Positions 52-61,550 of a stretch of DNA of 64,000 nt are shown here, piece by piece (the first letter of the stretch is position 1; every line of letters begins with the position of its first letter). The DNA is taken from the NCBI GenBank assembly GCA_047495785.1, contig JBLDXI010000074.1, forward strand, positions 124,001 to 188,000, given 5' to 3'. Under the pieces are notes generated by a model, which saw only the letters and a list, made by a program, of their open reading frames with translations, made no database searches and was not told the DNA's origin. The translations under genes and the position numbers were made by a program. This DNA is from Lepidodermella squamata. Lineage: Eukaryota; Animalia; Gastrotricha.

Positions 52-3000
52 GTCAATTTTATGGAAGTTCAAATCAACGAGAAGGCCGTTCGAACTGTTT
101 CGATCGTCAACAACGGAAAATTCAACTTCGCCTACCGCTGGGACACGAATTTCCCGAAAGTTTTCGCCGACGCCCTTACAGTTGAACCCGCCGAGGGCAT
201 TATTCTAGCCCAGGGCAAGGGCGAATGCCTCGTCAAATTTTGCCCACGCCAGAAAATGGCCCTTCAAAAATGCGAAGCGCGCCTCGTTGTTGTCGACGGG
301 CCGTCATTCGGCGTTCACTTCAGCGGATCAGCCCGCGAGCCCGGGCTCCACTTTTCGTTCATCGAACACGATTTCGGACCGTCTTTCGTGTTCAAACCCG
401 GCCTTCCGCCTAAAACAGCTACGTTGACAATCACAAATCGTGATCAACGTGAGCATAGCCTCGAATGCCTCTACCAAACAACACCGCATTTGGTACACAA
501 CATGGAGCAAGTCTACCTGGTAAAACCCGACCAAACGGTAGATATTGTTTTCAACTTCTACCCACGCGAGGTTAGGAAGTATTCGGAGAAAATTGTGTTT
601 GAAATGAACGGAATCAGCCAGCAAGTTGTGACCATCCGCGGCTCGGGCAGTGAGTTCAGCCTAGTCTGCGCCAACCCGAAACAACGCCTCGTTAAATTAG
701 GCGCGCTAAAAACGGGAGATTCAGTCAAGCGTGTCGTTCCGATAATCAATCAAACTTCGGTTGATTTGAAGTTTAAACTCAATCTAATCCCATCTAACGC
801 GTTGTTGAAGAATTATTTGAGCCTTGACACGAAGAGTAAGAGCTTAGAGTTGGTTTTGAAGCCTCGTGAACAGCATAACGTTGAGGTTTCATTCTCGCCG
901 CATAGCAGGGTGCCTCAATTTACGGAGGAGGTCGTGGCTGAGTGCATCGGAATCACGCAGCCGATTTTCGCCGTAACCGGGTGTTGCCAGGCTGTTGAAG
1001 TCTCGCTAGACATGGAGTACATCTCATTCGGCGCTGTGGTACTAAGATCCCAGGCTTCAAGGCGTGTCCTAATGCAGAATAACGGCGATATCGGGGCGAA
1101 ATTCGAGTGGGAACAGGGCAAATTCTCGCCGAATTTCACCATGTCTCCCATGTCCGGATATTTGACCCCGGGTATGTCTGTTGAGCTGGAAGTCACCTAC
1201 CACCCGACTTCAACCACCTTGGAATGCCGCGTTGATAAGGCAAAGTGTATCGTCGAAGGTATGAAAAAGCCGTTGTCTATGACGCTAACTGGAAGCTGCG
1301 TTCAAATGCCTGTCCCACAACGTGAATCTATCCATTTTTCGACCGTAGTTCGGCAAAAGGAGACTAAGCCGTTGCTGATCGGTAACCGGACCAATCAACT
1401 GTGGACTCTGAGGCCTGTTATCGAGGGTGAGTACTTCAGCGGCCCAGAATTGGTCGTTGTCGAGCCGCAGCAGAATAAGTCGTTTGAAGTCAGCTATCAG
1501 CCGCTGACCATGACAACCGAGGGCAAGAAGCATACCGGGTCGATATTTTTCGCCACACCAGACGGCCAGGGTCTGCTGTACACCGTTACCGGATCGGCTG
1601 ATCCGCCCAAGGTGTCTGGTCGGATCCAGCGGGAGGTTCCGTTCAAAACTCAATATGTCGAAGTGCTGCAGGTTGAGAATTGGCTGAAGCGGCCGCAGAG
1701 GTTTAAGATGAAGATGGAGCCGATAAAGCCGGATAAATTGGACCCGGGTACGACAATCAAGGGCTTGGACTATATCGATGTGCCCGGGCTGGTGAAGAAG
1801 GACTATCGACTCACGTTTTTCGCGTATAAGGAAGCGACTTACCTGGTCAAGGTAAGCGCAATTATTCTGAATTTTACGATTTGTTAAGGTCTAAAATTGA
1901 GCAAAATGAGAAATCCAACATGCATTGGATTGAATTAAACATGTAGAAAATCAAAAATCAAAAGGATTCAAAAATTGTTAAGTCACACTCGTTATCGAGG
2001 TTCCAAAAGTAGATCAAAGAGATCAAAAATAGCGAAATTGTCTTAATTTTTGAAAAATCGACGAATTTTCAGCAGATATTAAATGGAACAAAAACAAGAA
2101 AATGTGAAAATTTGGGAAAAATTCCAATTATTCCTAAAAATTACGCCAACATTTGGGATTTTCATAAAAATTTTCAAATTTCGAACTTTTCAAATGAATT
2201 TAATTGAATGTTTAATCCTATGATGTTGCAGCTAAAAAATGTCTAAATTTTCCTCTAGAAATATTTTTTTCACAATTTTGATGACCCGGAAGATATTAAA
2301 AATCTCATGATTTTTCAATTTTTTGAAATTCCATTTCAAATTTTGATTTGCATTCATAAGTGGTAGAGCTTCAAAATTCAATTTTTCCAATTTTTCAACT
2401 CTATTATTTTAATTTTAACTATACTTCAGGTCACTTTCATCAATGAGGAAACCGGCGAGTACCAATTCTACGAACTCCAGTTCAAATCTGTCCGAGGCTC
2501 CCCGCTCCAGACCATCCGCCTTACAACCCCAGTTCGCCTCGCAACTTTCCACTCACTCCTCCTCCAAAACCCACTCGCTAACGACGTCACGATGTCCGTA
2601 ACCGCAACGGCCCAGGAACTTCAATTCCCGAGCCAGTTGACGTTGCCAGCTAAAAGCGAGGGAAAACTGACGCTGGAGTACAAGCCATTGAAAGTCGGCG
2701 AGGTTCGCGGCAAACTGGAATTGTCGCACCCTGAACTTGGCGCCTACGTCTACGACCTGGTTCTCAACGCTATAACACCAGCGCCTGAGAAGCAGCTTGT
2801 GTTCACGACCAGTCTCGGCCAGTCTCAGGTTCAACAGGCCGTTTTTCTGAATTTCGCGAAACAAAAAACGGAATATTCATGCAAAATCGAACACGCTGAT
2901 TTCCACGTCGATAAAACGGTATCAGCAGCTGCGAGTACGCAGAACGCTGGTACGGAGGTTAGCATCGATGTGACGTATGAGCCGAGCCAGCAGGGCGAAG

Positions 3001-4064
3001 TTCGGACGCAGATGTTGGTTTCATCGACGGTGGGCGGCGATTACGTGTTCCCGATTGTGGCGACCTGTACGCCGCCCAAGCCGCAGGGACCGTTCGTAGT
3101 GTCGGCCGGTAGCCAGACGGCGATCATTTTCCGCAATGTTTTCCATCAGTCGGTCACGTTCAGCTTCCACGTTGACAATCCGCTGTTCCACGTGGCGAAA
3201 GCGACGGAAACTGTTCGAGCCGGCAAAGACTGCAGGTAAACATAATTTTTTTGAGAACTTTTTTATTTTTCTTTTCCTATCGAGTCGCGCTATTTCGGTA
3301 GAGGAAAATTCGGGGATTAAAACAATCAACCCCCCATATTTTTATGATATACGGTTGCGGAGATATTCCAGTTTCAAGTTGGTCACGTGACCTTACCTGT
3401 TGTCACACCTGAGTGATTATCTCAAAAACGGTGATAGCTAGGTAGCCGCTCTCAAAGAAAAAGGTCATCAGCGGGATGATATCTACTTTGAAACACATCC
3501 ACATTGGTGACAGGTGATAATAATTTTTGCGAAATCCATTTTGATGGCACCTGGTGACAGTCTCATGAGATAACTCTAGGCTCGTCACACTTTTTTATTC
3601 ACTCTCAAAAAATTTGTTTTTTTTGTTTTGAAAAACCGTCTGGCTGAATTGAGAGGTTTCAATGCCCAAGAAAGAGCTATTTAATTTTCCGTTGGCCAGG
3701 GTACCAGAAAACTGTACAACAGTCCCAATTTATAGCTCAACTTATTTCGATAGTGTTGAAACAATTTTCTTTTATTTTTCAGGATAATGATTGGTTTCGA
3801 CGGGGTACAAGATGGGTCGCCATCGACTGGAAAACTGGTCATCGCAACGTCCGCAACGCCCCCACCTGCGGGCCCAACCGGAGGCGGTTCGCAGTCTGAG
3901 CGAGCAGCCGCAGCCGCAGCTGCAGCCGCTGGTATGTTCCATCTTTATTGTTTCGAATTTTCCGACATTTATATTTCAATATTTTTCCAGCTGCTGCCGC
4001 CGCAGCTCAACAGCAAGCGATCGGTGCCAACCAATGGGTCTACTACCTGAGAGGGGTGTCGTAA
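52..4064 (+). CDS. HYDIN: HYDIN axonemal central-pair protein, 3' portion (last four exons; 5' part lies upstream of the window)
   Basis: Exons 52-1851, 2430-3235, 3783-3931 and 3991-4064 join in frame through GT-AG introns. Tandem ASH/Ig-like repeats (e.g. MQNNGDIGAKFEW, VENWLKRPQRF) and C-terminus QWVYYLRGVS* resemble HYDIN. Confidence 0.9.
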
Positions 4065-4399
4065 GGAAACATCCTGATGGAAAACTTACCAACAAAATTG
4101 ATCTCATTCATTATACTCCAAATGTGATATCATTTTTAATAACAAATCCATTCATTATAAATGATTTTATTGCAACGTATGTATTGCTTATAATCTTAAC
4201 GATTTTAAAATGATAGGTAACACTGCTTATGATTTTCTCTGAGCAACACGATACTGTGATTTTTGACTGATGGTATACTTATACAAAGATCAAACAGGCG
4301 TCTGTCATTTGAAATATTCGGAATATATTTAAAATAAAGCAATTGCTTATCTATCCAGTAAAATGACCAGAAATGTGAACTTGTCCATCTTCTGTTTAA

Positions 4400-4670
4400 A
4401 GTGCTTCAACATTTTCTAATTTTCTGAACCTCAGCCAGGCAGGTACAGTGAAATCGTCCAGGGAAAAGTTCTCAGTAGAGTTCGAGGAACAAGGCCTGTT
4501 AAGGAACTGACCGCCGATTCGGAACCAGTTCCGCCAGATTCAACATTATTGAGATACAGCATAAGAGTCGCCAATCGACCGCCCAACTCCCTGTTTTCAA
4601 CTTTCGAGGAGAAGTAGTCAAAATGAGGCCTGTAATGGCCTCCTATACCGTAATTTCCATCTTGGAATTA
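4400..4670 (-). pseudogene. Decayed 3' fragment of the prolyl 4-hydroxylase gene
   Basis: Aligns by eye to about 8740-9155 with many substitutions and an internal deletion of about 150 bp (about 8863-9010 missing); no intact frame. Confidence 0.85.
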
Positions 4671-5146
4671 AGGTTTGTGTAGTTCAGTTTAACATACATA
4701 AACATAATTCGACGCTCAAAATTGAAAAGTAACCTATCAGATTGTTCTAATGATAAATGTGCCACAAATAAGCGATGACAGTCTTGATTTTGAGTCATGA
4801 ATAGCTTGAATGATTGAATAATTTCCTCACGTTTTCGACGATCTCTGAAATTTTCGCTGAAAATTTGAACGAAGGAAATTGAAGTACGCTTTGCGAGATG
4901 CCCACCACAAACTTTATTAAAATACAATTCACTCGGATCAATTCAATTGAATAATTTACCAACACCATCAAACATGATATGCTAGGCACGAAATTCACGA
5001 TTTTACGAAGTGGCTGACGCTAAAACCCCACACTGGTTTCTTTAAAGCTAACGTTGATAAATATATATAGTACTCATTATTTCACGCAACGATTGCTCTC
5101 AGGTTTTCGTAATGCTCGTCCTCTATTGGCGGTCTTCAGGCGGTCC

Positions 5147-6524
5147 TCAGGGTTCCTCGATGGAGAGACGTGCAGTGGGTTCCCCAACCGCGAGACGGGC
5201 TGAAGGTTCCTCGATGGAGAGACGAGCTGAGGGTACCCCAACTGCTAGACGAGCTGAAGGTTCCTCGATGGAGAGACGAGCTGAGGGTTCCCCAACCGCG
5301 AGACGTGCTGAAGGTTCCTCGATGGAGAGACGAGCTGAGGGTTCCCCAACCGCGAGACGGGCTGAAGGTTCCTCAATCGAGAGACGAGCTGAGGGTTCCC
5401 CAACCGCGAGACGTGCTGAAGGTTCCTCGATGGAGAGACGAGCTGTGGGTTCCCCAACCGCGAGACGGGCTGAAGGTTCCTCGATGGAGAGACGAGCTGA
5501 GGGTTCCCCAACCGCGAGACGGGCTGAAGGTTCCTCGATGGAGAGACGAGCTGTGGGTTCCCCAACTGCTAGACGAGCTGTGGGTTCCCCAACCGCGAGA
5601 CGGGCTGAAGGTTCCCCAACCGCTAGACGAGCTGAGGGTTCCCCAACCGCGAGACGGGCTGAAGGTTCCTCGATGGAGAGACGAGCTGTGGGTTCCCCAA
5701 CTGCTAGACGAGCTGTGGGTTCCCCAACCGCGAGACGGGCTGAAGGTTCCCCAACCGCTAGACGAGCTGAGGGTTCCCCAACCGCGAGACGTGCTGAAGG
5801 TTCCTCGATGGAGAGACGAGCTGAGGGTTCCCCAACCGCGAGACGGGCTGAAGGTTCCTCGATGGAGAGACGAGCTGTGGGTTCCCCAACCGCGAGACGG
5901 GCTGAAGGTTCCCCAACCGCTAGACGAGCTGAGGGTTCCCCAACCGCGAGACGGGCTGAAGGTTCCTCGATGGAGAGACGAGCTGTGGGTTCCCCAACTG
6001 CTAGACGAGCTGTGGGTTCCCCAACCGCGAGACGGGCTGAAGGTTCCCCAACCGCTAGACGAGCTGAGGGTTCCCCAACCGCGAGACGGGCTGAAGGTTC
6101 CTCGATGGAGAGACGAGCTGTGGGTTCCCCAACTGCTAGACGAGCTGTGGGTTCCCCAACCGCGAGACGGGCTGAAGGTTCCCCAACCGCGAGACGGGCT
6201 GAAGGTTCCTCAATCGAGAGACGAGCTGAGGGTTCCCCAACCGCGAGACGTGCTGAAGGTTCCTCGATGGAGAGACGAGCTGAGGGTTCCCCAACCGCGA
6301 GACGGGCTGAAGGTTCCTCGATGGAGAGACGAGCTGAGGGTTCCCCAACCGCGAGACGGGCTGAAGGTTCCTCGATGGAGAGACGAGCTGAGCCAGTTGG
6401 ATTCGCGCTCGTGGACCACACAGCTACTGCGGCCTGAGAAAATTACGTAGTTTTACAACAAAACATGAACCTATCACGGAATGAAACTTACTACTAGCAG
6501 CATTGAAACCAAACGCTTGTTCAT
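5147..6524 (-). CDS. Two-exon secreted tandem-repeat protein (~439 aa): signal peptide plus 46 x (S/T)ARL(SIE/AVG)EP
   Basis: Exon 1 6524-6492 (MNKRLVSMLLV), GTAAGT donor, 58-nt intron ending TTTTTCTCAG, exon 2 6433-5147 in phase 0 (AAVAVWSTSANPTG then repeats, TGA). Minus-strand AATAAA at 4913-4918. Repeat variants are almost all synonymous or S/T in this frame. Confidence 0.8.
5150..6391. repeat. 27-bp coding minisatellite, ~46 units of two main types
   Basis: Units of the form GAGACGAGCTGAGGGTTCCCCAACCGC and GAGACGGGCTGAAGGTTCCTCGATGGA, alternating or in higher-order blocks. Confidence 0.97.
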
Positions 6525-7207
6525 TCTGGTAGAAGTGGATTTAAGAGAAATACAAAATTGAAATGATGAAATATGCATTCGTTACCCCCAATTTTATAAG
6601 CCTGACTGATTCAACCTTGCATCTGTATAAATATTCCTGATGTTTCACGTGAAATTCACCTTTTGTTCACATGTGAAATCATCAACGGGCGAAATTGAAG
6701 GCTTACTGTCAGTTAGTATGGCTATTTACATTGTTAGCGTTAACTTGGTAAATTTTCTGACGCAATATTTATGCTTATAAAACTTTCTCGAACTTTGAAC
6801 GGGGATAGCTTTCGCATCCCTTCTCATACGGCTCCTTTCAATATTTACTCAAGATTCAATTATGATGAATTATATCTTGTTTAAAAATTGTCTTCTTGAC
6901 TCGATAACAGCGAAATTCTACTTGCTTGTACACGTTTTTCGAGCTGAGAAGCGCGATAATTTTGCTCCTGTTAACCTAGCTCCTTTCAATATTTACTGAA
7001 TAGTCAAATAAAATACATCCGCTGTAAGAATTGTCTTCCCCGCAGGAATAATTAATTAATCAGGTTAATCTAATCTCTAGGGCAGGAATAATAATATGAT
7101 AATAACATTATCATAATATTATTATATCAAGTTTTCAGCATGCAAAAATTGATGATTAAATTGAATGCTTTTATAATTATGAACTTGGACAATTTTTTCC
7201 ATTTCAG

Positions 7208-8165
7208 ACCCTCCTGATCGAGATAACCGACCGCGACCCTGGCAACAACCCCGGCGGTATCCCGTACCGCCTCGTTGCCGAAGGCTGTGCGCCAACCATC
7301 AACAATTCCGACTACCGCGACGTCTTGGAAGAGCGCACCATCATCAAAAGCATTATGGTCTCAGTGTCAGGACAAGCGAGTCTCAGTGATAAAACCGACG
7401 ATTTTGAATAAACGAGGCCAACCCGCTTTAATTTTCCGCCGGACCCTGCTAGGGTGTTCAGACGAGGCGACGTTCGAGCCGTCAAACGACGGAACTCTAC
7501 CATCGAAAGTCACGATTGATATAACCGACCCAGTCTCGTGTTTCCGGGTCGAATCCCTCCAACCGACCCCGCTGGAAATTACCGAAATCACCGATGATTC
7601 ACCCCCAGTTACAGCCTCAAAGACAAAAGCGATAACTGAGACAGTCTTAGTCGGAAAAACTGCGTTGTATAAGGTGATTTTCTCGCCAACCAGCGCTGTT
7701 CGTTCGATAGGCGGGGTGCGGATTCGCGTTGAAGATAACCCATACGAAGACACGGTTATCCAGCTGATCGGCGAGTCTTACGACGAGAATCACAGACGCG
7801 CCCTCGCCCCCGCCGAAAATCAGATTCGCCCCACTTGACCTGGGCGATATTTACGGGAATATCTAACTCCACGTGTCGAACGCGAATCCTGAAAACAGAA
7901 TTTTTCATACAATCGCGGTTAAGCGAGGGGTTTGCTGCCGTGGTGTCACTTCGAGTTACCGGATTGTGAGTATTTAGTCAAGCGGAATATTAAGCTACTC
8001 AGGCCTCAGGGCCTGCCCGCCGACAGCCGGGCTCCTAGCTGGACCCTAAAACCCGCGCGATTGAGTTCAGCGTAGCCGGGGTCAGAATTACTACAGCCAA
8101 AATTATCTCTGTTTTGAACCCGACGAATAAACGGTACCACTTCGAATGGGTCAGCACTGATACAC
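7208..8165 (+). pseudogene. Collapsed HYDIN duplicate (patchwork of internal HYDIN segments with deletions and frameshifts)
   Basis: Translated pieces EITDRDPGNNPGGIPYRLVAEGC, KPTILNKRGQPALIFRRTLLG...DNPYEDTVIQLIGESY, PWCHFELPDCEYL and LDPKTRAIEFSVAGVR...VLNPTNKRYHFEW resemble HYDIN segments that lie N-terminal to the part in this window; frames shift between pieces. Confidence 0.75.
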
Positions 8166-8331: not shown

Positions 8332-8710
8332 CGCAGCTCAACAGCAAGCGATCGGTGCCAACCAATGGGTCTACTACCTGAGAGGGGTGTCGTAAGGAAA
8401 CATCCTGATGGAAAACTTACCAACAAAATTGATCTCATTCATTATACTCCAACTGTGATATCATTTTTAATAACAAATCCATTCATTATAAATGATTTTA
8501 TTGCAACGTATGTATTGCTTATAATCTTAACGATTTTAAAATGATAGGTAACACTGCTTATGATTTTCTCTGAGCAACACGATACTGTGATTTTTGACTG
8601 ATGGTATACTTATACAAAGATCAAACAGGCGTCTGTCATTTGAAATATTCGGAATATATTTAAAATAAAGCAATTGCTTATCTATCCAGTAAAATGACCA
8701 GAAATGCGAA
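8332..8710 (+). repeat. Near-identical copy of 4001-4380 (most of the last HYDIN exon plus 3' UTR)
   Basis: Direct comparison shows only isolated mismatches over about 375 bp. Confidence 0.95.
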
Positions 8711-8739
8711 CACGTCTAATTTCTGTTTAAAATAATGCC

Positions 8740-9981
8740 TCATACGTCTTCTACTTTCCTGAACCTCAACCAGTCAGGTACAGTAAAATCGTCCAGGGAA
8801 AAGTTCTCAGTAGAGTTTGAGGAACATGGCCTGTAAAGGAATTGGCCGCCGATTCGGAACCATTTGTTAGTCACCCATTTTTCACCTCGCAAAACTGGAC
8901 ATCCGCTGTGGAGCGTCCGCTCATCTGCCACCTCGTTTTTGCGATAGTTGTACCAGAAAATACCGGCCAACTTCTTAGCAGTTACCCTGAATTTCAGTTC
9001 GTGGAAACCAGTCCCGCCTCCAGATTCAACATCATTGAGATACAGCATAAGAGTCGCCAATCGATCGCCCAACTCCCTGTTTTGAACTTCTGAGGCGAAG
9101 TAGTCCAAATGAGGCATGTAGTGGCCTCCTATACCGTAATTTCCAACTTGGAATTCCTCACTGCCATCGAAACCAGGGTAAAGGCCTGTGTAGGCTGAGA
9201 TGAGTTGTGATAGCTCTGGCAGGAAAGAATGATCAAGCCAAGCAGTACGAGCCCGCCTTACGCTGTAGTCATATTCGGAACTTCCAGGTTCCTCCCCAAC
9301 AACTCCTGCCGATTCCAATTTAGCCGTTGCTTTTTCGATCAGCTGTGTGCCGTACTTCTTAGGAATAAAATCATGCCATAACACGACAAGCGGGTCCAAG
9401 TTGATAACTTCTTCCTTCACTGGCGATAGAATCAGCAAAGGATGCCGACCTCTGTCATCGTAGCGGCAGAAGCGTTTCGGGTCTCTCGCGAGGGCTTTTA
9501 GCTGCACATTTGCTTCGCCATCTCGACATATCTCGTACTCTGATGTCGCTGCTAATTTCTCTGCTGCGGACATCCTTTCCTCCAGAGGCTTTGTATCGAA
9601 GTCATTTGGCTCGGCAGGTGTTTTCACCTGGGACATGTAGTAATTCTTCCAAGAGGTCAGGTGTTTTAGCAGGTTATCATCAGTTCTTGGCATCTTGTTT
9701 AATGCAAGGTTGCAAAGGTAAAGAGCCTCCGATTTTTTTCCAAGGCCGAATGCGGCGTACTGCATGTAGTCGAGGATTTCCACTTCTCGTATCGAGCCAA
9801 TTTCGCTGGCATATGTACTGTTGAAAACTCGCCAAGCATTGAGCGCTGCTGCGTAGAGTTCTTCGAACTTCTTGGCATCTGACAGTTCCTGCAACGGTTT
9901 GTACGCTTCGTAGAGTTCAGTTGAAGTTTCTGAACCAGTTGACAACTTGAACGTTAGCAAAAGGATGAGGGCAATACTCAT
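8740..9981 (-). CDS. Prolyl 4-hydroxylase alpha-subunit-like 2OG-Fe(II) dioxygenase, intronless, shortened N-terminus
   Basis: Signal peptide; TPR-like EILDYMQYA segment; SEEFQVGNYGIGGHYMPHLD (HxD), GDRLATLMLYLNDVESGGGTGF, TLHSGCPVLRGEKWVTNKW. Confidence 0.93.
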   Translation of the reverse strand: MSIALILLLTFKLSTGSETSTELYEAYKPLQELSDAKKFEELYAAALNAWRVFNSTYASEIGSIREVEILDYMQYAAFGLGKKSEALYLCNLALNKMPRTDDNLLKHLTSWKNYYMSQVKTPAEPNDFDTKPLEERMSAAEKLAATSEYEICRDGEANVQLKALARDPKRFCRYDDRGRHPLLILSPVKEEVINLDPLVVLWHDFIPKKYGTQLIEKATAKLESAGVVGEEPGSSEYDYSVRRARTAWLDHSFLPELSQLISAYTGLYPGFDGSEEFQVGNYGIGGHYMPHLDYFASEVQNRELGDRLATLMLYLNDVESGGGTGFHELKFRVTAKKLAGIFWYNYRKNEVADERTLHSGCPVLRGEKWVTNKWFRIGGQFLYRPCSSNSTENFSLDDFTVPDWLRFRKVEDV

Positions 9982-11109: not shown

Positions 11110-12363
11110 ATGGATTTCCGCTTGCAAGTATTTTTCCAGATAGCAGCGATCTGCCTCATCAGTGCGTTCGCGCTTGAAGTGCCATGGCAAACATTTGGTG
11201 GGGATTTCACGCATTCCGGTTACCGGCCTGTCACGCTTGGACCTGACATTAGTTCTTTAAAACTTGCATGGACCGTCACTCAACCGCGCCCAGCTTCGGA
11301 CCCCTTCTATCCTCCAGTCATCTTCAATGAAACAGCTTATGTTCTAAGCGGACAAGGTTATCTCTTCGCTATAAATTTGAAAACTGGCTTTGTGACGAAT
11401 TTCGCTAATTTCACAAAAACTACGACTCAATACGGCGCGCCAACTCTGAGGGTATCAATCGATCGCTTTAATCCTAATCGAAAAATCGTAACAATTTATT
11501 CCCGATTGATGAATACTTCTCCACTGATAAATACCCTAGCCCTGTGCTCTATCGATGCGATAACCTTCAAGTTGAATTGGATTACAAATACTTTCAAACA
11601 AAACCTTCCATCAGCCATAGATGCGGCAGATGATGCTATCAGCGAAAAGCGAGACACCTACTATGTCTCAGGTGGTAATTGGTTTTCGGCCATCAACGCA
11701 TCAAGCGGCCGAGTAATTCTCGACTCGGTTTATACCCCGATTGGTTTCATCTTCCAAACAGCAGTCGATAAATCAGAAAGATTTTTGTTAGTGTCATCTT
11801 TTGGGAGTTTGTCCGGTTTGCATTTAGATAGTCTGCAATTAGCTTGGTCTACGTCAGTCAACAACACGAATGTCAATCTCTGGTACCCTATCGTGTCTCC
11901 AAATAACGACGGCAATTATCAAATGATTGTAATTGACGGTCCGGATGCAGAGCAATATCGCATTAAGGCTTTAGGATCGATGGGCGAGCTATTTTGGAGT
12001 AAGAAGTATCCCGGAAAGTATTGGGATATCAATGTTGTTCCTAGCCATAATGGTAGCCATATTTTTACGTATTCCAGTCTTAATGATGTTTCCATCTTGG
12101 ATGCCATGTCTGGTAAAACGGTTTCCTATTTGAAATGTGGCAACCCCTGTGGGAGAAATCGTTTCACTGACCAACCGATTATAACTAGAGACTACGCAAT
12201 TCTTAAAACGACGAATCAAATCTTTGTTTTTCGGTTGGTTTCTGGGGAATTGGCAGCGTTTACCCCTGAGCTGTCTGATACGATTAACTCAATGACACTA
12301 CGCGACGGTTACATTGTAATAGCTGACAGCTCTAATTCAGTGCTAGCGTTCAAGGCTGTATAA
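11110..12363 (+). CDS. Secreted PQQ-binding-like (BamB-type) beta-propeller protein, intronless
   Basis: Signal peptide; N-terminal WQTFGGDFTHSGY...LKLAWT motif; repeated blades LFAINLKTG, FSAINASSG, LDAMSGK with Trp docking residues. Confidence 0.75.
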   Translation: MDFRLQVFFQIAAICLISAFALEVPWQTFGGDFTHSGYRPVTLGPDISSLKLAWTVTQPRPASDPFYPPVIFNETAYVLSGQGYLFAINLKTGFVTNFANFTKTTTQYGAPTLRVSIDRFNPNRKIVTIYSRLMNTSPLINTLALCSIDAITFKLNWITNTFKQNLPSAIDAADDAISEKRDTYYVSGGNWFSAINASSGRVILDSVYTPIGFIFQTAVDKSERFLLVSSFGSLSGLHLDSLQLAWSTSVNNTNVNLWYPIVSPNNDGNYQMIVIDGPDAEQYRIKALGSMGELFWSKKYPGKYWDINVVPSHNGSHIFTYSSLNDVSILDAMSGKTVSYLKCGNPCGRNRFTDQPIITRDYAILKTTNQIFVFRLVSGELAAFTPELSDTINSMTLRDGYIVIADSSNSVLAFKAV

Positions 12364-13531
12364 ATATATTCAATCTTCAATCATGTATACATATTAATGA
12401 TGTTTTTCCTCTCTATTGGTTATCGTTGATTACAATAAAAACGGCTGTGGAGAAAACTAGGCCATTCTATTCTTGTATAGCCAGGCAAAGAAAAACATGA
12501 TGCCCACTTCCCAATTGATGAATTATTCACTTGTGATCGATCATATGAGGAAGAGAGCATGAGCGCCTAAACGTAAAGATGCCCGAGAAATGAATTCCTC
12601 GCATTACGTGAAACATCTTAATACCAGTCTTGCGCTGCTTTCATTGTCATCTTTAGCTATTCTGATTGTTCAATTAGCATTTTTGGATCGACGATATGTT
12701 TGTAGTCAATCTGGTGAAAAATCAGCCGTAAATAGCCAAAATGTCATTGTTTACCTTATTGGGCGAAAAGAGGCTGATGCTCAAAATCTCGCGGACTCCC
12801 TCGCCAACCTTTTCCGATTTTTCAACCGGAAGTTCGGCTATCGTATAATCATATTCCACGAAAAGGAAACTGATCCATACAAAGTTTTGGAACTCATCAA
12901 TTCCCGGCATGAGCTTATGGATAATGAGGTATCGCTGATCGAGTTCGCAGAGGTGGAGTTCAAGTTACCGCCTCATTTCTTCCCTCGCTATGGGACAGGC
13001 TTGAACAAACTGAATTTCAAACCGGTTGACGAGGAAAGATTTCCCGGGTACCATCATATGTGCAACTTCTGGTTTCAGGGTATTTTTGACCACCCAGCAA
13101 TGAACGACGTCAAGTACTACATGCGGCTCGATACTGATTCTCAACTGAGGTCGAACATCAAATACGATTTGTTCAAATTTATGGAGAATAATGGCTTCTT
13201 ATACTCATATCGGAGTAAGCTAACGGACGAGCCTTTGGCCACTGTTGGATTGGCTGATTTTGTACAAGATTTTGAGTCAAGGCATGGAGAAAACCTCGCC
13301 GCTCTTCAGTTGCTGAACATACCTCGTAGAAATTCGACCAAACGATTAAATTATCGCCTCCCAATTTACTACAACAACTTCGAAATCGTTCACGTACCGA
13401 CTTTCCGCGAAAACCCACTCATCCAAGCTTTTGAGAGTGAAGTTGTTGATTCAGTGAAGATTTACCTGCACCGCTGGGGCGATGCTCCACTGCGGTACTT
13501 GACCGTCAATATGGTCTTCAATCTTAGGAAA

Positions 13532-15650
13532 TTAAGGAATTCTTCCCGGTGTTGAGGGCAGAACCGAGAATTCTGCCCGCTGAAAATGCCCGAGGGCGTA
13601 GCGGAGCGCAGCGAAGCGAAGCCCGAGGGTATTTTCAAGGGCTGAATTCGAGGTTTTGCCCGAGACACAAGGGAAGAGTTCCTGTTCCTTCCCAGTTGGT
13701 TATTTTCGTTAATCCGACACTCGGACGAGTGAAAATGGGGAATGGTGTATAGTGCGTATGAAAGATGACCGTTGTTAATAACGAAAATAAGAAATCCAGC
13801 TTAAAATTTGTAGCAAATTTTTTTTTTGAATTTTTTTTGTTCGTTGTTCATTTCCTTGTTTTATTATCAATTGAATATTGCGAATTTCCGTCGAATTTTC
13901 AATGGAGATCACTTTTGATATTGGCGACCTGGGCCTCGGTGCTCTCGCTGACGGCTCCGTGGAAGTGAAACTGCGCGAAGAATCCGATCCAATTCGACTT
14001 CTCGAACGAGAACTTGATGCTGATATCGAAGAAGAAGAATCCGATGAAGAGGGTGATACGTCGGAGTTCATTCAAGAAGTCGAAAATTTCGTGGCTGGTT
14101 TTGAAGCAAACGGCACAGCTCAGAAAACCAAGCAGCACTGGAGCCGATTTGTCGCATTTGTCGAGCAGCGATTCCACATTTCGGAGCAACTATTAGTTGA
14201 ACTTACGGTCAAGGATATGGATCTCTATGTCGCTCTTTTTCTCAAGCAGTTGACGAAGACTGATGGTAGCGCGATGGAGCCGACAACGATTCGAGGCATT
14301 TATTCCTCCATCATTCGCCATCTCCGCGATGTGACGAAGAACGAAATCAACTTCACCATGGCGAGAGTCGATTTCTTCTACAGCATGAAAATGCTGAAAT
14401 CCAAGTTTGTCGAATCTAAGCGTGCTGGAAAGGGAAATAAAGCCCGAGCATCTGAATGCCTAGAACGAGAAGATATTGATAAAATGCGTGAGGCGAAAAC
14501 GCTGACTGATGACACGCCAATCGGTTTGATCACGATGCTGTGGCTGGTTTTCACCGTGTATTTCGGTCTTCGTGGCCGTGATGAACATCTACAAATGAAG
14601 TAGGTTGTTGGATTGCCATTGAAAAATTGTTAAATTGGCCGTTTTCAGGTTTGGTGATGTCCAGCTAAAAACCGAATCTGGAGGTCGCAGGTATCTCGAA
14701 TTCAACGAGCGACAGACTAAAACCAGGAATGGCGAATCAACCCACTCAAAACTGGCACCACGAGCATACGAGAACGGTGGCTTTTTCTGCCCGGTTCGAT
14801 TGTTCCTTATTTTTTGTGCAAAACGACCGGGAAAGTTTTCGCGCCCGAGTGACCCAATGTATGTTGGTTGCCTGACCCGATTTCGACCCGACGGCCTCTT
14901 CTACAAATGCCAAAATTTGGGCAAGAACCCCCTTGGATCGCTCCTCAAGGACGCCGCTGTCGGTGCTGGTATTACCAAACGAATCACGAACCACTCGGCT
15001 CGAAAGTTTCTCGTCTCAACCCTCTCTGAACTCGGTGTCGATTCTCGAAAGATCATCCAGATTTCTGGTCATGCATCGGTCGATTCTCTGAACAGTTACC
15101 ACAAACTCAACACCTCTGAACGACGAAGTATCAGCGACAAACTGGCTGTCGGTTTCGGTGATGGACAATCAGCTGCAGTTTCGGGTGTGTCTGCACAAGA
15201 GATCAAGCCAACCGAAGGATTGGTGGTGGCCGAGTCGCATTTCTCGCAAACGCTGCTGCTTCGAAACGTCGAAAATGACCCGCGCGATGAGCCACCCGTA
15301 AAGCAAGCTAAACCCATGCCGATCTTCAATTTCTCGAATTGCTCCGTCGTTATTAACAATTAATCCGGCCCAAACACTTGTTTTAAAGTTTAAACATTCT
15401 AATAAAGGTTATTCACTTGTTCACTCGTTTGGTCAGAGTCTGAAGGTTGTAGTAAAGGGACTGGGAACGGAAATTGAAGTTGTGCAACATTATTTCAGGT
15501 GAGAGGTTTTCCCGAATTTTCGAGAGCATCAATTGATTTTCGAAAATAAAAAATCCACCCTAATCGTTTGAGCGGGCAGAAACAGCGGGCAGAAACATCG
15601 GGCAGAATCACTTTTTCCGTCTAGGCAAAAAATAACCAACTGGGCAGGAA
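13532..15650 (+). mobile_element. Crypton-type tyrosine-recombinase DNA transposon (~2.1 kb)
   Basis: Bounded by the interrupted GT15 gene; AGGAA at both junctions; ~150-bp hairpin at the left end (13535-13683); asymmetric inverted repeat 13681-13706 vs 15629-15654; YR ORF inside. Confidence 0.85.
13902..15363 (+). CDS. DUF3504-type tyrosine recombinase (~470 aa, two exons)
   Basis: Exons 13902-14599 and 14649-15363 (49-nt GT-AG intron) give GLRGRDEHLQMKFGD; catalytic set R (GLRG), K (QTKT), HxxR (TNHSAR), H (ISGH), Y (SLNSY) intact. Confidence 0.9.
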
Positions 15651-55600: not shown

Positions 55601-58600
55601 CATAATAATTTTACATAGAGAACGTAGTGTTCACTACATTCTCTATGCATCTTCATTGCTTAATTTAATAAGGTTGAGGTCCATAGGGCGTGTTCAAAAA
55701 GTCCCAGCGCTCTGGAACTCACATTCTTAATTACTTCCCTCTCTGAAACCTCTAAAAAAATGCGCGTTAATTAGTAATAGTATTTTCTTCATTTTCGGCC
55801 AAAAAAATCGAGCGGTATCATCAGAAGATGCTTCACCTTGCCTGGCAATTTCGGCGACAGGGTTCGAACTTGTCGACGTTGTCGCTGCGATCGAAATTGG
55901 AGGTTGAGCAGCGGCAGTAGTCGTCGTTATTGAAGTCGAAGCTCGAGCTACAGTTGTAGTCGCTAAAGCAGAACCTTTGCCGACCACTTGAGGCCGCTTT
56001 TCGAGCACGCTTCGCAGGTGATGCTGGGCGAAGTGACAAATCAGCCAATTGCGCGTCCACCGGTAACGCGGCATTAGGTCCAGTCCGGATGAAGTCTGGA
56101 TTAAGAGGATAAAGTCCAGGAATATTGCCGAGGTTATAATTAGAGAAATTGGGATTCTGGAACAATTCTTGAGGTGGCTGCACAGCAGGCGGGTAATAAT
56201 TCTGAGGGCAGTAGAATTCGGCCGGATTGCCAAAGTTCATCAAAGGGTTAACATGTTGCTGTTGTGGTTGTCGTAAAAAATTCGGCGGAATTTGCATACC
56301 CGGTAGAGGGTCCAATGGTCGTTGCTGCCCTGCAGTCGTTGCTGCCCATCGGTCAAGATGAGCCGGACGATTCGGAACTGGCAACCGCGGATCTGGCTGT
56401 GGATTTCTTGGCCGATTTTGGCTGGGATCCGCCGAAAACCTGTATTGCCACGGGTCCATTTCAGCAAGAATTTTGCTAGTTCAAAAGGTATTCCTATCCT
56501 AAAATGGAAAATCGAAAAATTCATCGGGGAAGTTCAGCAGGTTTTCAACAAGGCCAGAATGGTTTCAAGGGGAGGCGATCATAATGGCAAACACACTTTG
56601 GCAGACACGTTATGGCATACTCACTCTGGCTCGATTTGACTATAGCCTAAAACCACTCTAAAATTCATCAATCATTATGGCAAATCACAAAATAAAACAG
56701 GAGGTTGTCATTCTGGCACATTCTGGACCATATGGCGCCCATGGCGTTACACCCCTTTTCTCGCGAGTAGTCAGTCTATACTGATATTATGTCTATGGTT
56801 AACACCGCCTTGGAGAAATGGAAGAAACAGCCAATCAAAACAATGTTTGGCCAAACTTCGAGCAGGGCCTTCTGAGCGGCCCATTCGAAATCGGTGATGC
56901 ACGTCGTTAGAAACAGCCCGGGGTACAAAAACCGAACGGATTTGAAAGCCAGAAGGTAGATGTCGTAGTTTTTCCACGGCAACAACATGTACAGCGTCGG
57001 GAAAATAGTACCATGGGCGTGTGTATGAAGCGTGTAAAGCTGGGTGAACTGCGGCGGCGCGATTTTGAAGGTTCCATCACAGCTAGCATGACCGCGAAGC
57101 CGCATCAGTCGGTATAGCATCGACATCGTACCGAAGATGAGAAATCGGTTGTTCGCCCAACAAGAGAGCACAAGTCGCCAAGCAATCTCGGTTTTGCCAG
57201 CGTAGCGTAAATCATAGCTTTCATGATTATCGGAATGGGAGATTTCTGTGTAGTTAACATGTCTGCATTCGCTCGAATAAAACGATGGACCAAATTCACG
57301 ATTCTGTATGCCGGGAGAGAAGGCCTACAACCAATTGATTGGTTACGGCCCAAGTTTTGCGGTGTTATTATGGCGAAATGTATGTAATTCTAGATTCTAT
57401 TACCTCTTAGGTCAGCTCTCGACTGGGTGACGATGCGATGACAATCGAGGCGGTCGTGGTTTTGATCACCGAAAGCGATCCAGCCGACATTGAATCCGCG
57501 CTACTTCAAGCCTCAATCTTGCAACAAATGAGAACGCGTTTCTTTCTGGTTCAATTTTTCGAGACTCAAACTCCTACTCGGCTATCGACCATATCTTCTT
57601 ACTACGTCACTTTACCGCCGAATTTCGCCGACATTGTCTCAGCAAGTTTCGGCTTTCTTGATTCACTTTGCGCGCAGAAAATTTCGGCTCCTAAAAATGC
57701 TGGCCTGACCGGGGGCAGAAATGAGCAGGCTGATAACGAACCTCAACAGCAAGGAGAAAAGGTCGATTCTGATAAAGAACAACCAGCAAATAGCGAGACC
57801 AAGGATGCCCCGCAGGTTGCTCAGATAAACCAGCCTTCATCTTACCCAGACGTCGATGAGTCTGATAAAGTTGTCATTCAAACTAATGGCGATGTCGAAC
57901 AGAAACGCAGTGTTGTTCCGCCAAAAGCGACTGGTTTAGTGGTGAATCCACTTTGGGTCGAGCCTGCTGATGCCGGTGAAGGGGATGTTACAGCAGACAC
58001 TAAAACGACGAAGTTCCCAGGCCAGATCCTGCTTGAAGCTAGGCCGGATGCTAGTCGAGCAAAATCTGTCGCTACTGTGAAAGGTTCAGATGATCTCGAA
58101 AGCCAGAGTTCCCCTGATGCCAGAGTTCCCATCGAGCAAGCTGTTAGTGATATCCTGAACTTTGGTAACTCAGAAACTCCCAGAAAAGAAGTTCGGATCG
58201 TCCCGAATATCGACTCATCGCCTTCGGGCTCTGATCTCGTCAAACCCAAGGATTCATCGCTGCCGAAAGAAATTGAAGCCACCAAGGTTTGGAAACCTCA
58301 GGGGGCAGATCAAAGTGCTAATAAACCAGTTACTACTTGGATCGATTCAAAAGCCAAGATAGAGCCAGGTGCTGTTAGTGATGTCTTGAACTTTGGTAAC
58401 TCGGAAAGTCCTAAACAAGAAGTTCGGATCGTCCCGAATATTGACTCAGTTCCCTCCGGCTCTGACCTCTTCAAGCCTAAGGATTCATTACAACCGAAAC
58501 AAATTGAAGCTAGCCAAGTTTCGAAATCTCAGGAGGCAGGTCGAGATGCTAGTAAACCAGTTATCACCTGGATTGATTCAGAAGCCAAGGCTGAACAGGT

Positions 58601-61550
58601 TCAAAGTTCGAAAAACGCTGCTGAAAATGACGAAGCCGACGAGGAAGATGAGATTATCGGGGATCCTGATCCGCCAAGGATTCCAAAAGAGGTTCCAAGA
58701 GATCGCATCGATGCGAAAATCGAAATTCCCTCTAACCCGGCTTCAACGCAAGTCGGTACCGAAGATCGCGCTGTTAGGATTGTCCCTGATTTAGGAGATG
58801 AAGTTCGGAAAATACCGGCAAATGAACCTGTCCAGATTAATCCAGGTGTTCTAGCTGGCTCTGATTCGAACGCCCCGTCGACTGCTCGAGATTCCAGTAG
58901 TGGCCAAGAATCTCGCGATAAGAAGATTGAAAGTTTTGATGAAGACTTGCTCCCGAAATCTCAGCCGAATATCGATCCGAGACCTAACCTTGTACCCTCG
59001 AACATCCCTCAATCGATTAACATTATCAACGAAAATCTACCGAAGTTGAAGCCAATAGAAACAGCAAAGCCTGCTGAGAAGGCCGATCCTGAACCTATTG
59101 CTAAGAAACTACCCAAGGATGGTATACGAAATTCAGACGATATTCAGCGGAATAAAATCAGCCCTGTGTCTGAAAACAAACCGGTGATTTTGCCTGATGG
59201 CCATTTTATCCCAGTTAACAAGCCCAGCGAGTCGCAGGCTCAGCTTATCAATGACAAGTTTAATGAGAAGCCAGTTGATGTCAACAGGGTGGTTAATGGT
59301 CAGGGATCTCCTGTTGCTGAAAGTGAAAAGCCGGTGGAGGAGTTTAAAGCTCCCGAAATTCCGATCCCGAAACCGGATTCGGGTAATCTTCAGAATGCAA
59401 TCGAATCAACGACGAAGCAAAGCACAGTAAGCTTCGATACAGGTTAGGAATTCTGAAATAATCTTAATGATAGGCAGCTTGAAATTGCAAACCACCTTGA
59501 TTAGGAAATTATAGGAAAGACCCTTTTCCTCGCACTGAATTTATAATTTGACTTATTTCTACAGTTACCATCAGTTCACCGGAGCTGACCTCCACCGCGA
59601 CCCAGGCTTCAACAACCAAAGTTCAATGGTCTCCGAAGATCAAGGAAGCCAGCTCAAAGCTTACAACAACTTCGACATTGCCAACAACTCAACTTCCTGT
59701 AACAACCGAAAAATCCTCGATTTTGCCGGATGCGCAAACGTCCACTACAACCGCTGCAACTACGTCTACGACGAAGAAACCTGTAACTGTTACTGAAAAA
59801 ACCACTCGGCGAGGTAAATCGACTACTGCACCAGCTTCAACTACAACAACGCAATCAATCTTACCCGATCCGACATTCGACGCGAATGAGTTCTGCTTCT
59901 CATGCTTATCCCGTCGCAACCAGAAGGACCTGTACTCGAATCCGGTAGATTGTCACTCTTACTATCAGTGCTTATACAAAAGCGAAACTCAAGCCATCGC
60001 GTTCTTGAGAAGATGTCCTGAAGGAACGTTTTTCCACGAAGAAGTTCTCAGCTGTTTGCCGGAAGGTGACATTCCTTGCATGGATCCATGCCAGGACGAC
60101 ACGATCGCCTCTCAACACTGCTATGCAGCTCCCGAGGATTGCGCCAAATTTTTCACATGCTCGAATTCTGCTTCGTATGCCCAGTGCTGCCCGGATGGAA
60201 CTCGATTCAACGAAGCTATTTGCTCTTGCGTGACAGACGCAACTTGCGTGTCTGATTGCAGCATGCTTTTGGGTGGCTACAATGACGCCCCTGTTGTAGC
60301 GCCGAAAACTGATGGAGTGACTTGTACGGATGCTTACAACAACGTAATGCGACCAACGAAACGAGCTGAAATTTTCGAACTGGTCGACATGTCCAACGGG
60401 CAGGTGCCGAGGTACATTCCGATACCTTGTGCACCTGGTTCGCTGTTTGACATAAACGCTTGTCAATGTTCGATTTCGACCGATTTTCTAGATTTTCCAA
60501 CCGTCACGCCTGATGTGTTGAAGTGCAGTTTGTATCTACCGTTTGATGGCGATTACCAGGACAAGTCAACGAGTCATTTTCAGATTTACAAGTATGGTGA
60601 TGTAAATTTTCTCCGGAATGATTCGGCCGTTGGTTCGGGTGGGTCGATGCGTTTCCGAGATGGAATTTTGGAGGTTCCGGGACTCAAAACTATGGACCAT
60701 CGGGATAAAGCGTCATGGTGCCTTTTCTTCAGGTGAGACAGGTTTTCTCCAGGATAATTCACACTTCAACTTTCTTCATATAACACAGATGTGAAAATAC
60801 CGATGGAACCTTTACTTGCACGGAACCGAGCGGAATTATATCGAATAATAACAACAACGACGATAACGTTTTCAAAACATGCGATTACTCGATTATAACC
60901 GCAACTCGATCAGACGGACTGATTGAGATTAGGTTGAATTTCAAACACCCCAAGAGCCGTCAATCAGTGGTTAGTGGACCTTTCAATGCTTCGTCAACTG
61001 GCTGGGTGCAAGTCTGCACGGTGTATGACGGCACATTCATCAAGCTTTACGTCAATGGGGTGAGTATCAATTGTTTTCCACTAGTATTCCCGTTCTCCCT
61101 GAATCTTCGCGGAATTTTTTTGCACTAGGCTAACGAGTTCAAATTGCTTGGTGAATTCCTTCTGAACTTGTTTTTTTCGATAAACACCTTAATTTTTGGT
61201 GAAATTAAGCTTAATATCAGCGAACACTTGAGATGTGAAGCCATATAACAATTGCTTACATTTTTGCAGGAAGGCGTAGCCGCTTCTCCAGCAGGTGGTA
61301 CTCTTGCGATAAGGTGAGTTCCATTGCCGTTGATTTAGCAAGGCAATCATTCAAATTCACCTGGATCTCCTTTTTCAGTCATTGCCCATACGCGATTGGA
61401 GGAGATGAGCTGTATGGACAGTTTGAAGGATCAGTCGATGAAGTTCTTGTCTGTGGGCATGCGATGACATCGGACGAAATCAAAGCGCATTACGAAGGGG
61501 ATCGAAGTTATCTGGTAACGAAAGGTCTCATTCCGAATCGTATAGCCTGA
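52696..61550 (+). CDS. Large secreted Pif/BMSP-like protein: degenerate VWA, acidic/Pro-rich linker, Thr-rich region, CBM14 chitin-binding repeats, LamG/ConA-like domain
   Basis: Exons 52696-53118, 57411-59442, 59565-60732, 60789-61059, 61270-61313, 61379-61550 are phase-compatible. LFIVVDRS and AVVVLIT (VWA-like); NPVDCHSYYQC..CPEGTFF and CCPDGTRFN (CBM14); LYLPFDGD, WVQVCTVYDG..IKLYVNG, FEGSVDEV (LamG). Confidence 0.78.
53412..55159. mobile_element. Non-autonomous TIR element (Tc1/mariner/pogo-type), TA target duplication
   Basis: TA-GAGGACCCCGCCCTAATTTCGGCC ... GGCCGAAATTAGGGCGGGGTCCTC-TA. Confidence 0.85.
54250..55067. mobile_element. pogo-like MITE nested inside the previous element
   Basis: TA-CCGTAAGGCGGTCTTACTTCGGACA ... 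TGTCCGAAGTAAGACCGCCTTACGG-TA; internal GGGTAA(C/G)TTCGGACA repeats. Confidence 0.88.
55833..56459 (-). other. Pro/Gln/Asn-rich ORF of unknown function next to the MULE fragment
   Basis: 208-aa ATG ORF, antisense within the host intron; no recognisable domain. Confidence 0.3.
56776..57180 (-). mobile_element. MULE/Mutator transposase fragment
   Basis: CDGTFKIAPPQFTQLYTLH, ITDFE, GCFFHFSKAV (D, D, CxxH); truncated before the catalytic Glu. Confidence 0.88.
58140..58590 (+). repeat. Internal 231-bp (77-aa) tandem duplication in the Pif-like linker
   Basis: AVSDILNFGNSETP...WIDSKAK repeated as AVSDVLNFGNSESP...WIDSEAK. Confidence 0.9.

Follow-up and report, generated by a model that had tools for sequence, protein, structure and literature searches.

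In the alpha-factor and apidaecin precursors, an endoprotease cut at a dibasic site (KR or RR) precedes trimming by dipeptidyl peptidases, which are exopeptidases that remove N-terminal X-Pro or X-Ala pairs only; promelittin carries an N-terminal pro-region made entirely of such pairs. Convertases cut at (K/R)-Xn-(K/R), where n is 0, 2, 4 or 6, and SKI-1/S1P cuts at R-X-aliphatic-Z, where Z excludes Val, Pro, Cys and Glu (PMC8310232). The notothenioid antifreeze glycoprotein (AFGP) gene consists of a signal exon and a polyprotein exon that is free of dibasic sites, and its Thr-Ala-Ala runs are separated by distinct, conserved, cleavable three-residue linkers (PMC10256766).

We analyzed a window of 64,000 nt (the whole stretch of DNA under study) from the gastrotrich Lepidodermella squamata, in which a sequence with the look of a 27-base minisatellite most likely constitutes a small animal gene with two exons, whose product is exported and consists of 46 nine-residue units. 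The predicted product resembles the alpha-factor, apidaecin and promelittin precursors in combining a putative signal peptide with short repeated units that place Glu-Pro and X-Ala pairs beside a candidate peptide, but differs from them in having neither a dibasic site nor an all-dipeptide pro-region, its N-terminus being NP-TG. The AFGP gene is the closest architectural parallel that likewise lacks dibasic sites. However, the units of the repeat gene are all equivalent, with no separate linker element, and its protein shares no sequence similarity with AFGP and has no Thr-Ala-Ala glycosylation motif.

Anatomy of the probable gene and its repeat array

The predicted gene lies on the minus strand and comprises the following features, listed in the direction of transcription:

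6592 to 6598, minus strand: TATAAAA box, read from the sequence
A at 6564, minus strand: Inr-like TCATTTC, about 34 nt downstream of the TATAAAA
6564 to 6525, minus strand: predicted 5'UTR of about 40 nt
6492 to 6524, minus strand: coding part of exon 1, 11 codons (MNKRLVSMLLV), ATG with A at -3
6434 to 6491, minus strand: phase-0 intron of 58 nt, GTAAGT...TTCTCAG
6433 to 5147, minus strand: exon 2, 1,287 nt, 429 codons
6392 to 6433, minus strand: non-repeat head of exon 2, AAVAVWSTSA then NPTG
5150 to 6391, minus strand: repeat array, 46 x 27 nt, [ST]ARL[SA][IV][EG]EP
5147 to 5149, minus strand: TGA stop, directly after unit 46
5146 to about 4895, minus strand: predicted 3'UTR
4913 to 4918, minus strand: AATAAA polyadenylation signal followed by a GT-rich stretch, 230 nt downstream of the stop

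This is the two-exon arrangement that an earlier note had described from the sequence, with an 11-codon first exon, an in-phase 58-nt intron, and a signal peptide and NPTG followed by 46 units and a stop, and we found it as described. The TATAAAA box contains the only TATAAA in the 375 nt upstream of the ATG. Exon 1 encodes the n-region and the first half of the h-region of the predicted signal peptide, and AAVAVWSTSA at the start of exon 2 supplies the rest, placing T at -3 and A at -1 of the cut. The signal peptide and its cleavage site, judged by eye from the two exon translations, comprise a basic n-region, a 13-residue hydrophobic core that spans both exons, and T-S-A before the cut. Exon 2 translates as AAVAVWSTSANPTG, then the 46 units, then TGA. 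The hydrophobic core on the minus strand is completed only by splicing the canonical phase-0 intron; if the intron is retained, the frame stops after six further codons. The gene model proposed in the earlier note is thus supported by its sequence signals, while the RNA junction at 6492/6433 that would accompany it was seen in no spliced read or contig of three sequencing runs (X1, X2 and X3) over positions 6300-7200. Annotation of a barely studied animal would miss a secreted-protein gene as repetitive as this, because repeat masking hides it.

The array measures 1,242 nt and holds exactly 46 units of 27 nt, without any indel. Ten distinct DNA variants of the unit encode five peptide variants, namely SARLSIEEP, TARLSIEEP, SARLAVGEP, TARLAVGEP and SARLAVGVP, and the units divide into 17 of the SIE type and 29 of the AVG type. 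The earlier formula of (S/T)ARL(SIE/AVG)EP repeated 46 times holds for the count, with one unit, the single SARLAVGVP, departing from it. Tandem Repeats Finder reports periods of 54 and 135 nt for the array, and a five-unit (135-nt) higher-order block occurs four times in the order of the units, from which we infer that the array grew by recent block duplication. Unequal crossing-over in the 27- and 135-nt register would keep such an array homogeneous while changing its size. The copy number is corroborated by read depth and is not an assembly artefact: in X2 (2024, genomic), the k-mer depth of the array contig is 796 against 95 for the single-copy flank, an 8.4-fold excess, and the same array k-mers have a mean multiplicity of 8.7 in the assembled window. 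If it codes as predicted, the gene would illustrate cleanly how a coding array can expand through in-frame duplication of its unit.

Coding status, sequencing runs and immediate surroundings

Three of the six reading frames are open through the array, two of them on the plus strand, so that an open frame alone says little about coding. The same count is what might be expected if the locus were a non-coding minisatellite, or the relic of a dead or never-expressed gene, in which the open frames are a by-product of a GC-rich 27-nt unit. We therefore turn to the variants among the units, where 13 distinct departures from the consensus were scored with the SIE and AVG unit types treated separately. 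In minus frame 0, ten of these are synonymous and three non-synonymous, against an expected synonymous share of 0.29 (binomial P = 5e-4); in plus frame 1, the split is nine to four (P = 2e-3). A single codon phase accounts for ten of the 13 variants (P about 0.005 for any phase) and, when counted by column, for six of eight (P about 0.06). This third-base variation suggests coding in minus frame 0 or plus frame 1. The synonymous test cannot separate the strands, because the wobble positions of these two frames coincide, and the earlier argument that doubly synonymous variants favour the minus strand proved weak when the 10:3 of minus frame 0 was set against the 9:4 of plus frame 1. The genome has little codon bias, and a codon-usage score based on nine ORFs of the window did not separate the frames either. 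We call the strand minus because the gene signals are in register there, together with a soft profile of read depth.

That profile comes from the reads of X1, X2 and X3, none of which is recorded as RNA, and which were compared with positions 6300-7200 beside the array. X2 is plainly genomic; one of its contigs extends without a break from unit 1, across the intron, to 7200. X3 (2014, under the same organism label, its kind unrecorded) covers the array at a depth of about 8-9 per copy after division by k-mer multiplicity, and a contig that connects the final units with the 37 nt immediately past the stop has a depth of 15.8, with all of its k-mers single-copy. It has no coverage over 6393-7200, a hole that by itself proves nothing, and the spliced 5' contig expected of it was not found there. 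This depth profile is unlike that of genomic DNA, because uniform DNA at such depth should cover the upstream flank; it fits 3'-biased minus-strand RNA better, which we take as soft evidence. X1, from a differently labelled organism, yields contigs of 45-60 nt that are about 95% identical to the units (aligned at 6302-6346), implying that a close relative has a diverged version of the array. A hybrid variant unit in X1 reads RFSMGEP in the minus frame, with Leu replaced by Phe and Ile by Met so that hydrophobic residues stay hydrophobic; read in the plus frame, the change is just as mild.

We consider it unlikely that the locus is a non-coding minisatellite or a gene relic. Such a reading would sit well with the borderline phase bias by column, with the fact that no run recorded as RNA contains the gene and no homologue was found, and with the gene debris that flanks the locus, an oxygenase fragment on one side and a stray HYDIN fragment on the other. 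However, it leaves the third-base periodicity of the variants and the lack of indels to chance, and it does not account for a full, in-register set of signals for promoter, start, splicing, stop and polyadenylation, for the RNA-like depth profile of X3, or for a relative in X1 whose unit is still about 95% identical and has a variant that preserves the hydrophobic pattern.

The surroundings contain the following features:

61 to 3239 (61 to 1887 and 2592 to 3239), plus strand: C-terminal exons of HYDIN
4001 to 4669, minus strand: partial copy of the 3' end of a 2OG-Fe(II) oxygenase gene, gene debris, compared with 8332 to 9155
7275 to 7838, plus strand: isolated HYDIN-like fragment, gene debris, matching mammalian HYDIN residues 3513-3649

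The HYDIN exon at 2592-3236 matches residues 4903-5105 of 5154. We considered and rejected a nesting of the repeat gene within a HYDIN intron, as this last exon lies near the HYDIN C-terminus; judging by these matches, the repeat gene is downstream of HYDIN and convergent with it. The copy at 4001-4669 is 91-95% identical to 8332-9155, with a 140-nt gap, and sits just past the poly(A) signal of the repeat gene. Its source is the gene of a secreted 2OG-Fe(II) oxygenase (prolyl-hydroxylase-like) at 8740-9981, together with downstream DNA. The HYDIN-like fragment at 7275-7838 is out of order relative to the C-terminal exons and is probably either a remnant of a pseudogene or part of a second HYDIN-like gene. 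The stretch of the repeat gene, about 4.3 kb, is bounded by the oxygenase copy and the stray HYDIN fragment, which suggests a rearranged, young locus.

The predicted protein, the search for relatives and possible processing

Removal of the predicted signal peptide would leave a mature product of 418 residues (about 43 kDa, pI about 4.9) with no Cys, no Lys and no aromatic residue. We favour, with moderate confidence, the explanation that a genuine gene of two exons, specific to this lineage, lies on the minus strand and that its exported repeat protein acts whole in extracellular material. Splicing would join the short signal-peptide exon to the long exon of 46 nonapeptide units, and the protein, once exported, could work as an intact, polymer-like component of that material, which might be cuticle or scale, the egg envelope, an adhesive or mucus. 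If the protein does help to build cuticle, scales, egg envelope or adhesive, it would offer a first molecular handle on those materials.

Within the unit, small or hydrophobic residues (A2, L4 and V/I6) alternate with polar ones (R3, S/A5 and E/G7), so that each set would occupy its own face, and an E-P-S/T turn follows. Each unit could thus form a short amphipathic strand closed by that turn, and the chain might stack as a beta-solenoid or else stay extended. AlphaFold, given the single sequence, predicts a solenoid with one strand per unit (mean pLDDT 74, 140 residues at 90 or above), with one of five models confident. Foldseek returned weak matches to generic beta-helices only, none of them with E below 0.01. 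RTX beta-rolls and the N-terminal part of DUF6470 share the nine-residue period, the alternating hydrophobic positions and the turn. In contrast to RTX proteins, the repeat protein has no GGxGxD calcium motif.

In Pfam, DUF6470 scores 95.9 bits against a gathering threshold of 28.9. The proteins of this family (YviE) occur in bacteria, measure about 180 residues and are associated with the flagellum (PMC13277936). The match covers only positions 8-63 of the 178 in the profile, about a third of it, and the score grows by about 3 bits per unit, from 19.9 for 54 residues (six units) to 32-38 for 108 residues (twelve units). We rejected membership in the family, given a partial profile match, a score summed over repeats, and a protein that is eukaryotic, spliced in our model, predicted to be secreted and encoded by 429 codons in exon 2 alone, whereas DUF6470 proteins are bacterial and about 180 residues long; the likeness appears to reflect a common strand-turn nonapeptide motif and not kinship. 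Pfam and NCBIfam matches to HYR, PAXX, T2SSN and MXAN_5187_C were also set aside, being sums over repeats with no single stretch that passes.

No homologue was returned by a word-indexed search with exon 2. An exhaustive phmmer search of 1.84 billion representatives gave 616 matches; those examined were unrelated low-complexity proteins, either of period 9 or rich in E/P/S/A, and neither the unit motif nor the head motif occurred in any of the best 150 of the 616. A 108-residue piece had a sole match, the EukProt Trinity ORF P0066 (180 aa, 59% identical), a minor, fourth-ranked ORF in a transcript of a protist, built of EEPSARLAA(A) repeats, and we took this as a chance low-complexity likeness. 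The ESM Atlas search returned nothing above 0.83, a degenerate unit pattern met two single chance matches without repeats in JGI metagenomes, and exact-product look-ups for the plus-strand ORF and the neighbouring oxygenase ORF gave no match. There is no paralogue of the repeat gene inside the 64,000-nt window. The repeat gene is probably a lineage-specific orphan, with no relatives in the public data covered by the word-indexed, phmmer, ESM Atlas and JGI metagenome searches.

The main alternative for the fate of the protein is a multi-copy precursor in which a non-canonical or unknown endoprotease makes one cut in each unit, for instance behind the single Arg or behind Pro. About 46 peptides of eight or nine residues, in two kinds, would be set free and perhaps then be trimmed by dipeptidyl peptidases. 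The design of the protein invites this reading, with a signal peptide followed by almost no pro-region and then only near-identical units of two alternating sorts, in which EP-SA and EP-TA are X-Pro and X-Ala pairs. There is also a precedent for polyprotein processing at non-dibasic sites in the Leu-X-Phe linkers of AFGP (PMC10256766). The mature chain, however, contains none of the convertase sites of the form (K/R)-Xn-(K/R) that would flank the units: Arg occurs once per unit, Lys is absent, and all 45 spacings between basic residues are 9, so that n is 8 and not 0, 2, 4 or 6. The lone Arg has Leu at P1'. The SKI-1/S1P motif R-X-aliphatic-Z fails in both unit types, RLAV having Val at Z (P1) and RLSI having Ser at the aliphatic position (P2). 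Nor is there an amidation signal, as no Gly-basic pair is present and Gly is always followed by Glu-Pro.

The earlier proposal that dipeptidyl peptidases by themselves release RLAVG and RLSIE, which was based on the EP-SA or EP-TA dipeptides directly before RL in every unit, is likewise not supported. The chain after the predicted signal-peptide cut starts NP-TG-SA-RL, and trimming would stall after one step because NP is followed by TG, so that these enzymes could not begin on the units. Exopeptidases cannot cut the internal bonds E|EP or G|EP, and RLAVG and RLSIE would therefore not be freed. Two further points tell against the precursor reading: no position of the unit varies as a relaxed spacer would, and the peptides released would have unblocked ends and an acidic character, in which known signalling and defence peptides differ from them. 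Altogether we regard once-per-unit cleavage by such an endoprotease as rather unlikely, and we think it a shade more doubtful that a 46-copy precursor is matured by a route free of dibasic, amidation and SKI-1/S1P signals, such as a novel endoprotease combined with EP-SA trimming. Cleavage of the protein into peptides, if it occurred, would imply a processing enzyme that is so far unknown, and the precursor reading, if true, would mean that animals can mature secreted peptides by a new logic, here in a phylum with an unexplored peptide repertoire. The unprocessed adhesive or structural secretion that the earlier note listed as an alternative is a better fit than release by dipeptidyl peptidases, although the lack of processing is itself inferred.

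The plus strand and more distant neighbours

It is very improbable that the plus strand codes instead, through an intronless ORF at 5112-6437 for an intracellular, highly charged, disordered protein of 441 aa with units GSSMERRAE / GSPTARRAE, the minus-strand signals being fortuitous: this frame is open, has an ATG at 5112 with TATATA 50 nt upstream, and renders nine of the 13 unit variants synonymous, but its nearest AATAAA is 570 nt beyond the stop, its product has no Pfam match and was disordered throughout in the AlphaFold control (pLDDT 42), a plus-strand transcript would give a depth profile opposite to that of X3, which peaks at the would-be 5' end and is absent over the whole would-be 3'UTR, and the minus-strand intron, split signal peptide, TATA and poly(A) signal would all have to be coincidences, at a rough chance below 1e-4.

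Further along the window, the more distant neighbours of the repeat gene are secretory-pathway genes, a context that supports an exported product weakly at best. An ORF at 11110-12363 (plus strand) encodes 417 residues with a hydrophobic N-terminus and a weak PQQ_2/beta-propeller match, and may be a secreted propeller protein. The ORF at 12590-13555 (plus strand) carries a Glyco_transf_15 (Kre2/Mnt1-type alpha-1,2-mannosyltransferase) domain (E = 8e-25); this family is mainly fungal and is unusual in an animal genome. Farther downstream, an ORF of 669 residues at 57438-59447 (plus strand), which has no Pfam match, contains a 231-nt tandem duplication at 58140-58589, and it is adjoined by the gene of a chitin-binding peritrophin-A (CBM_14) protein at 59678-60736 (plus strand).
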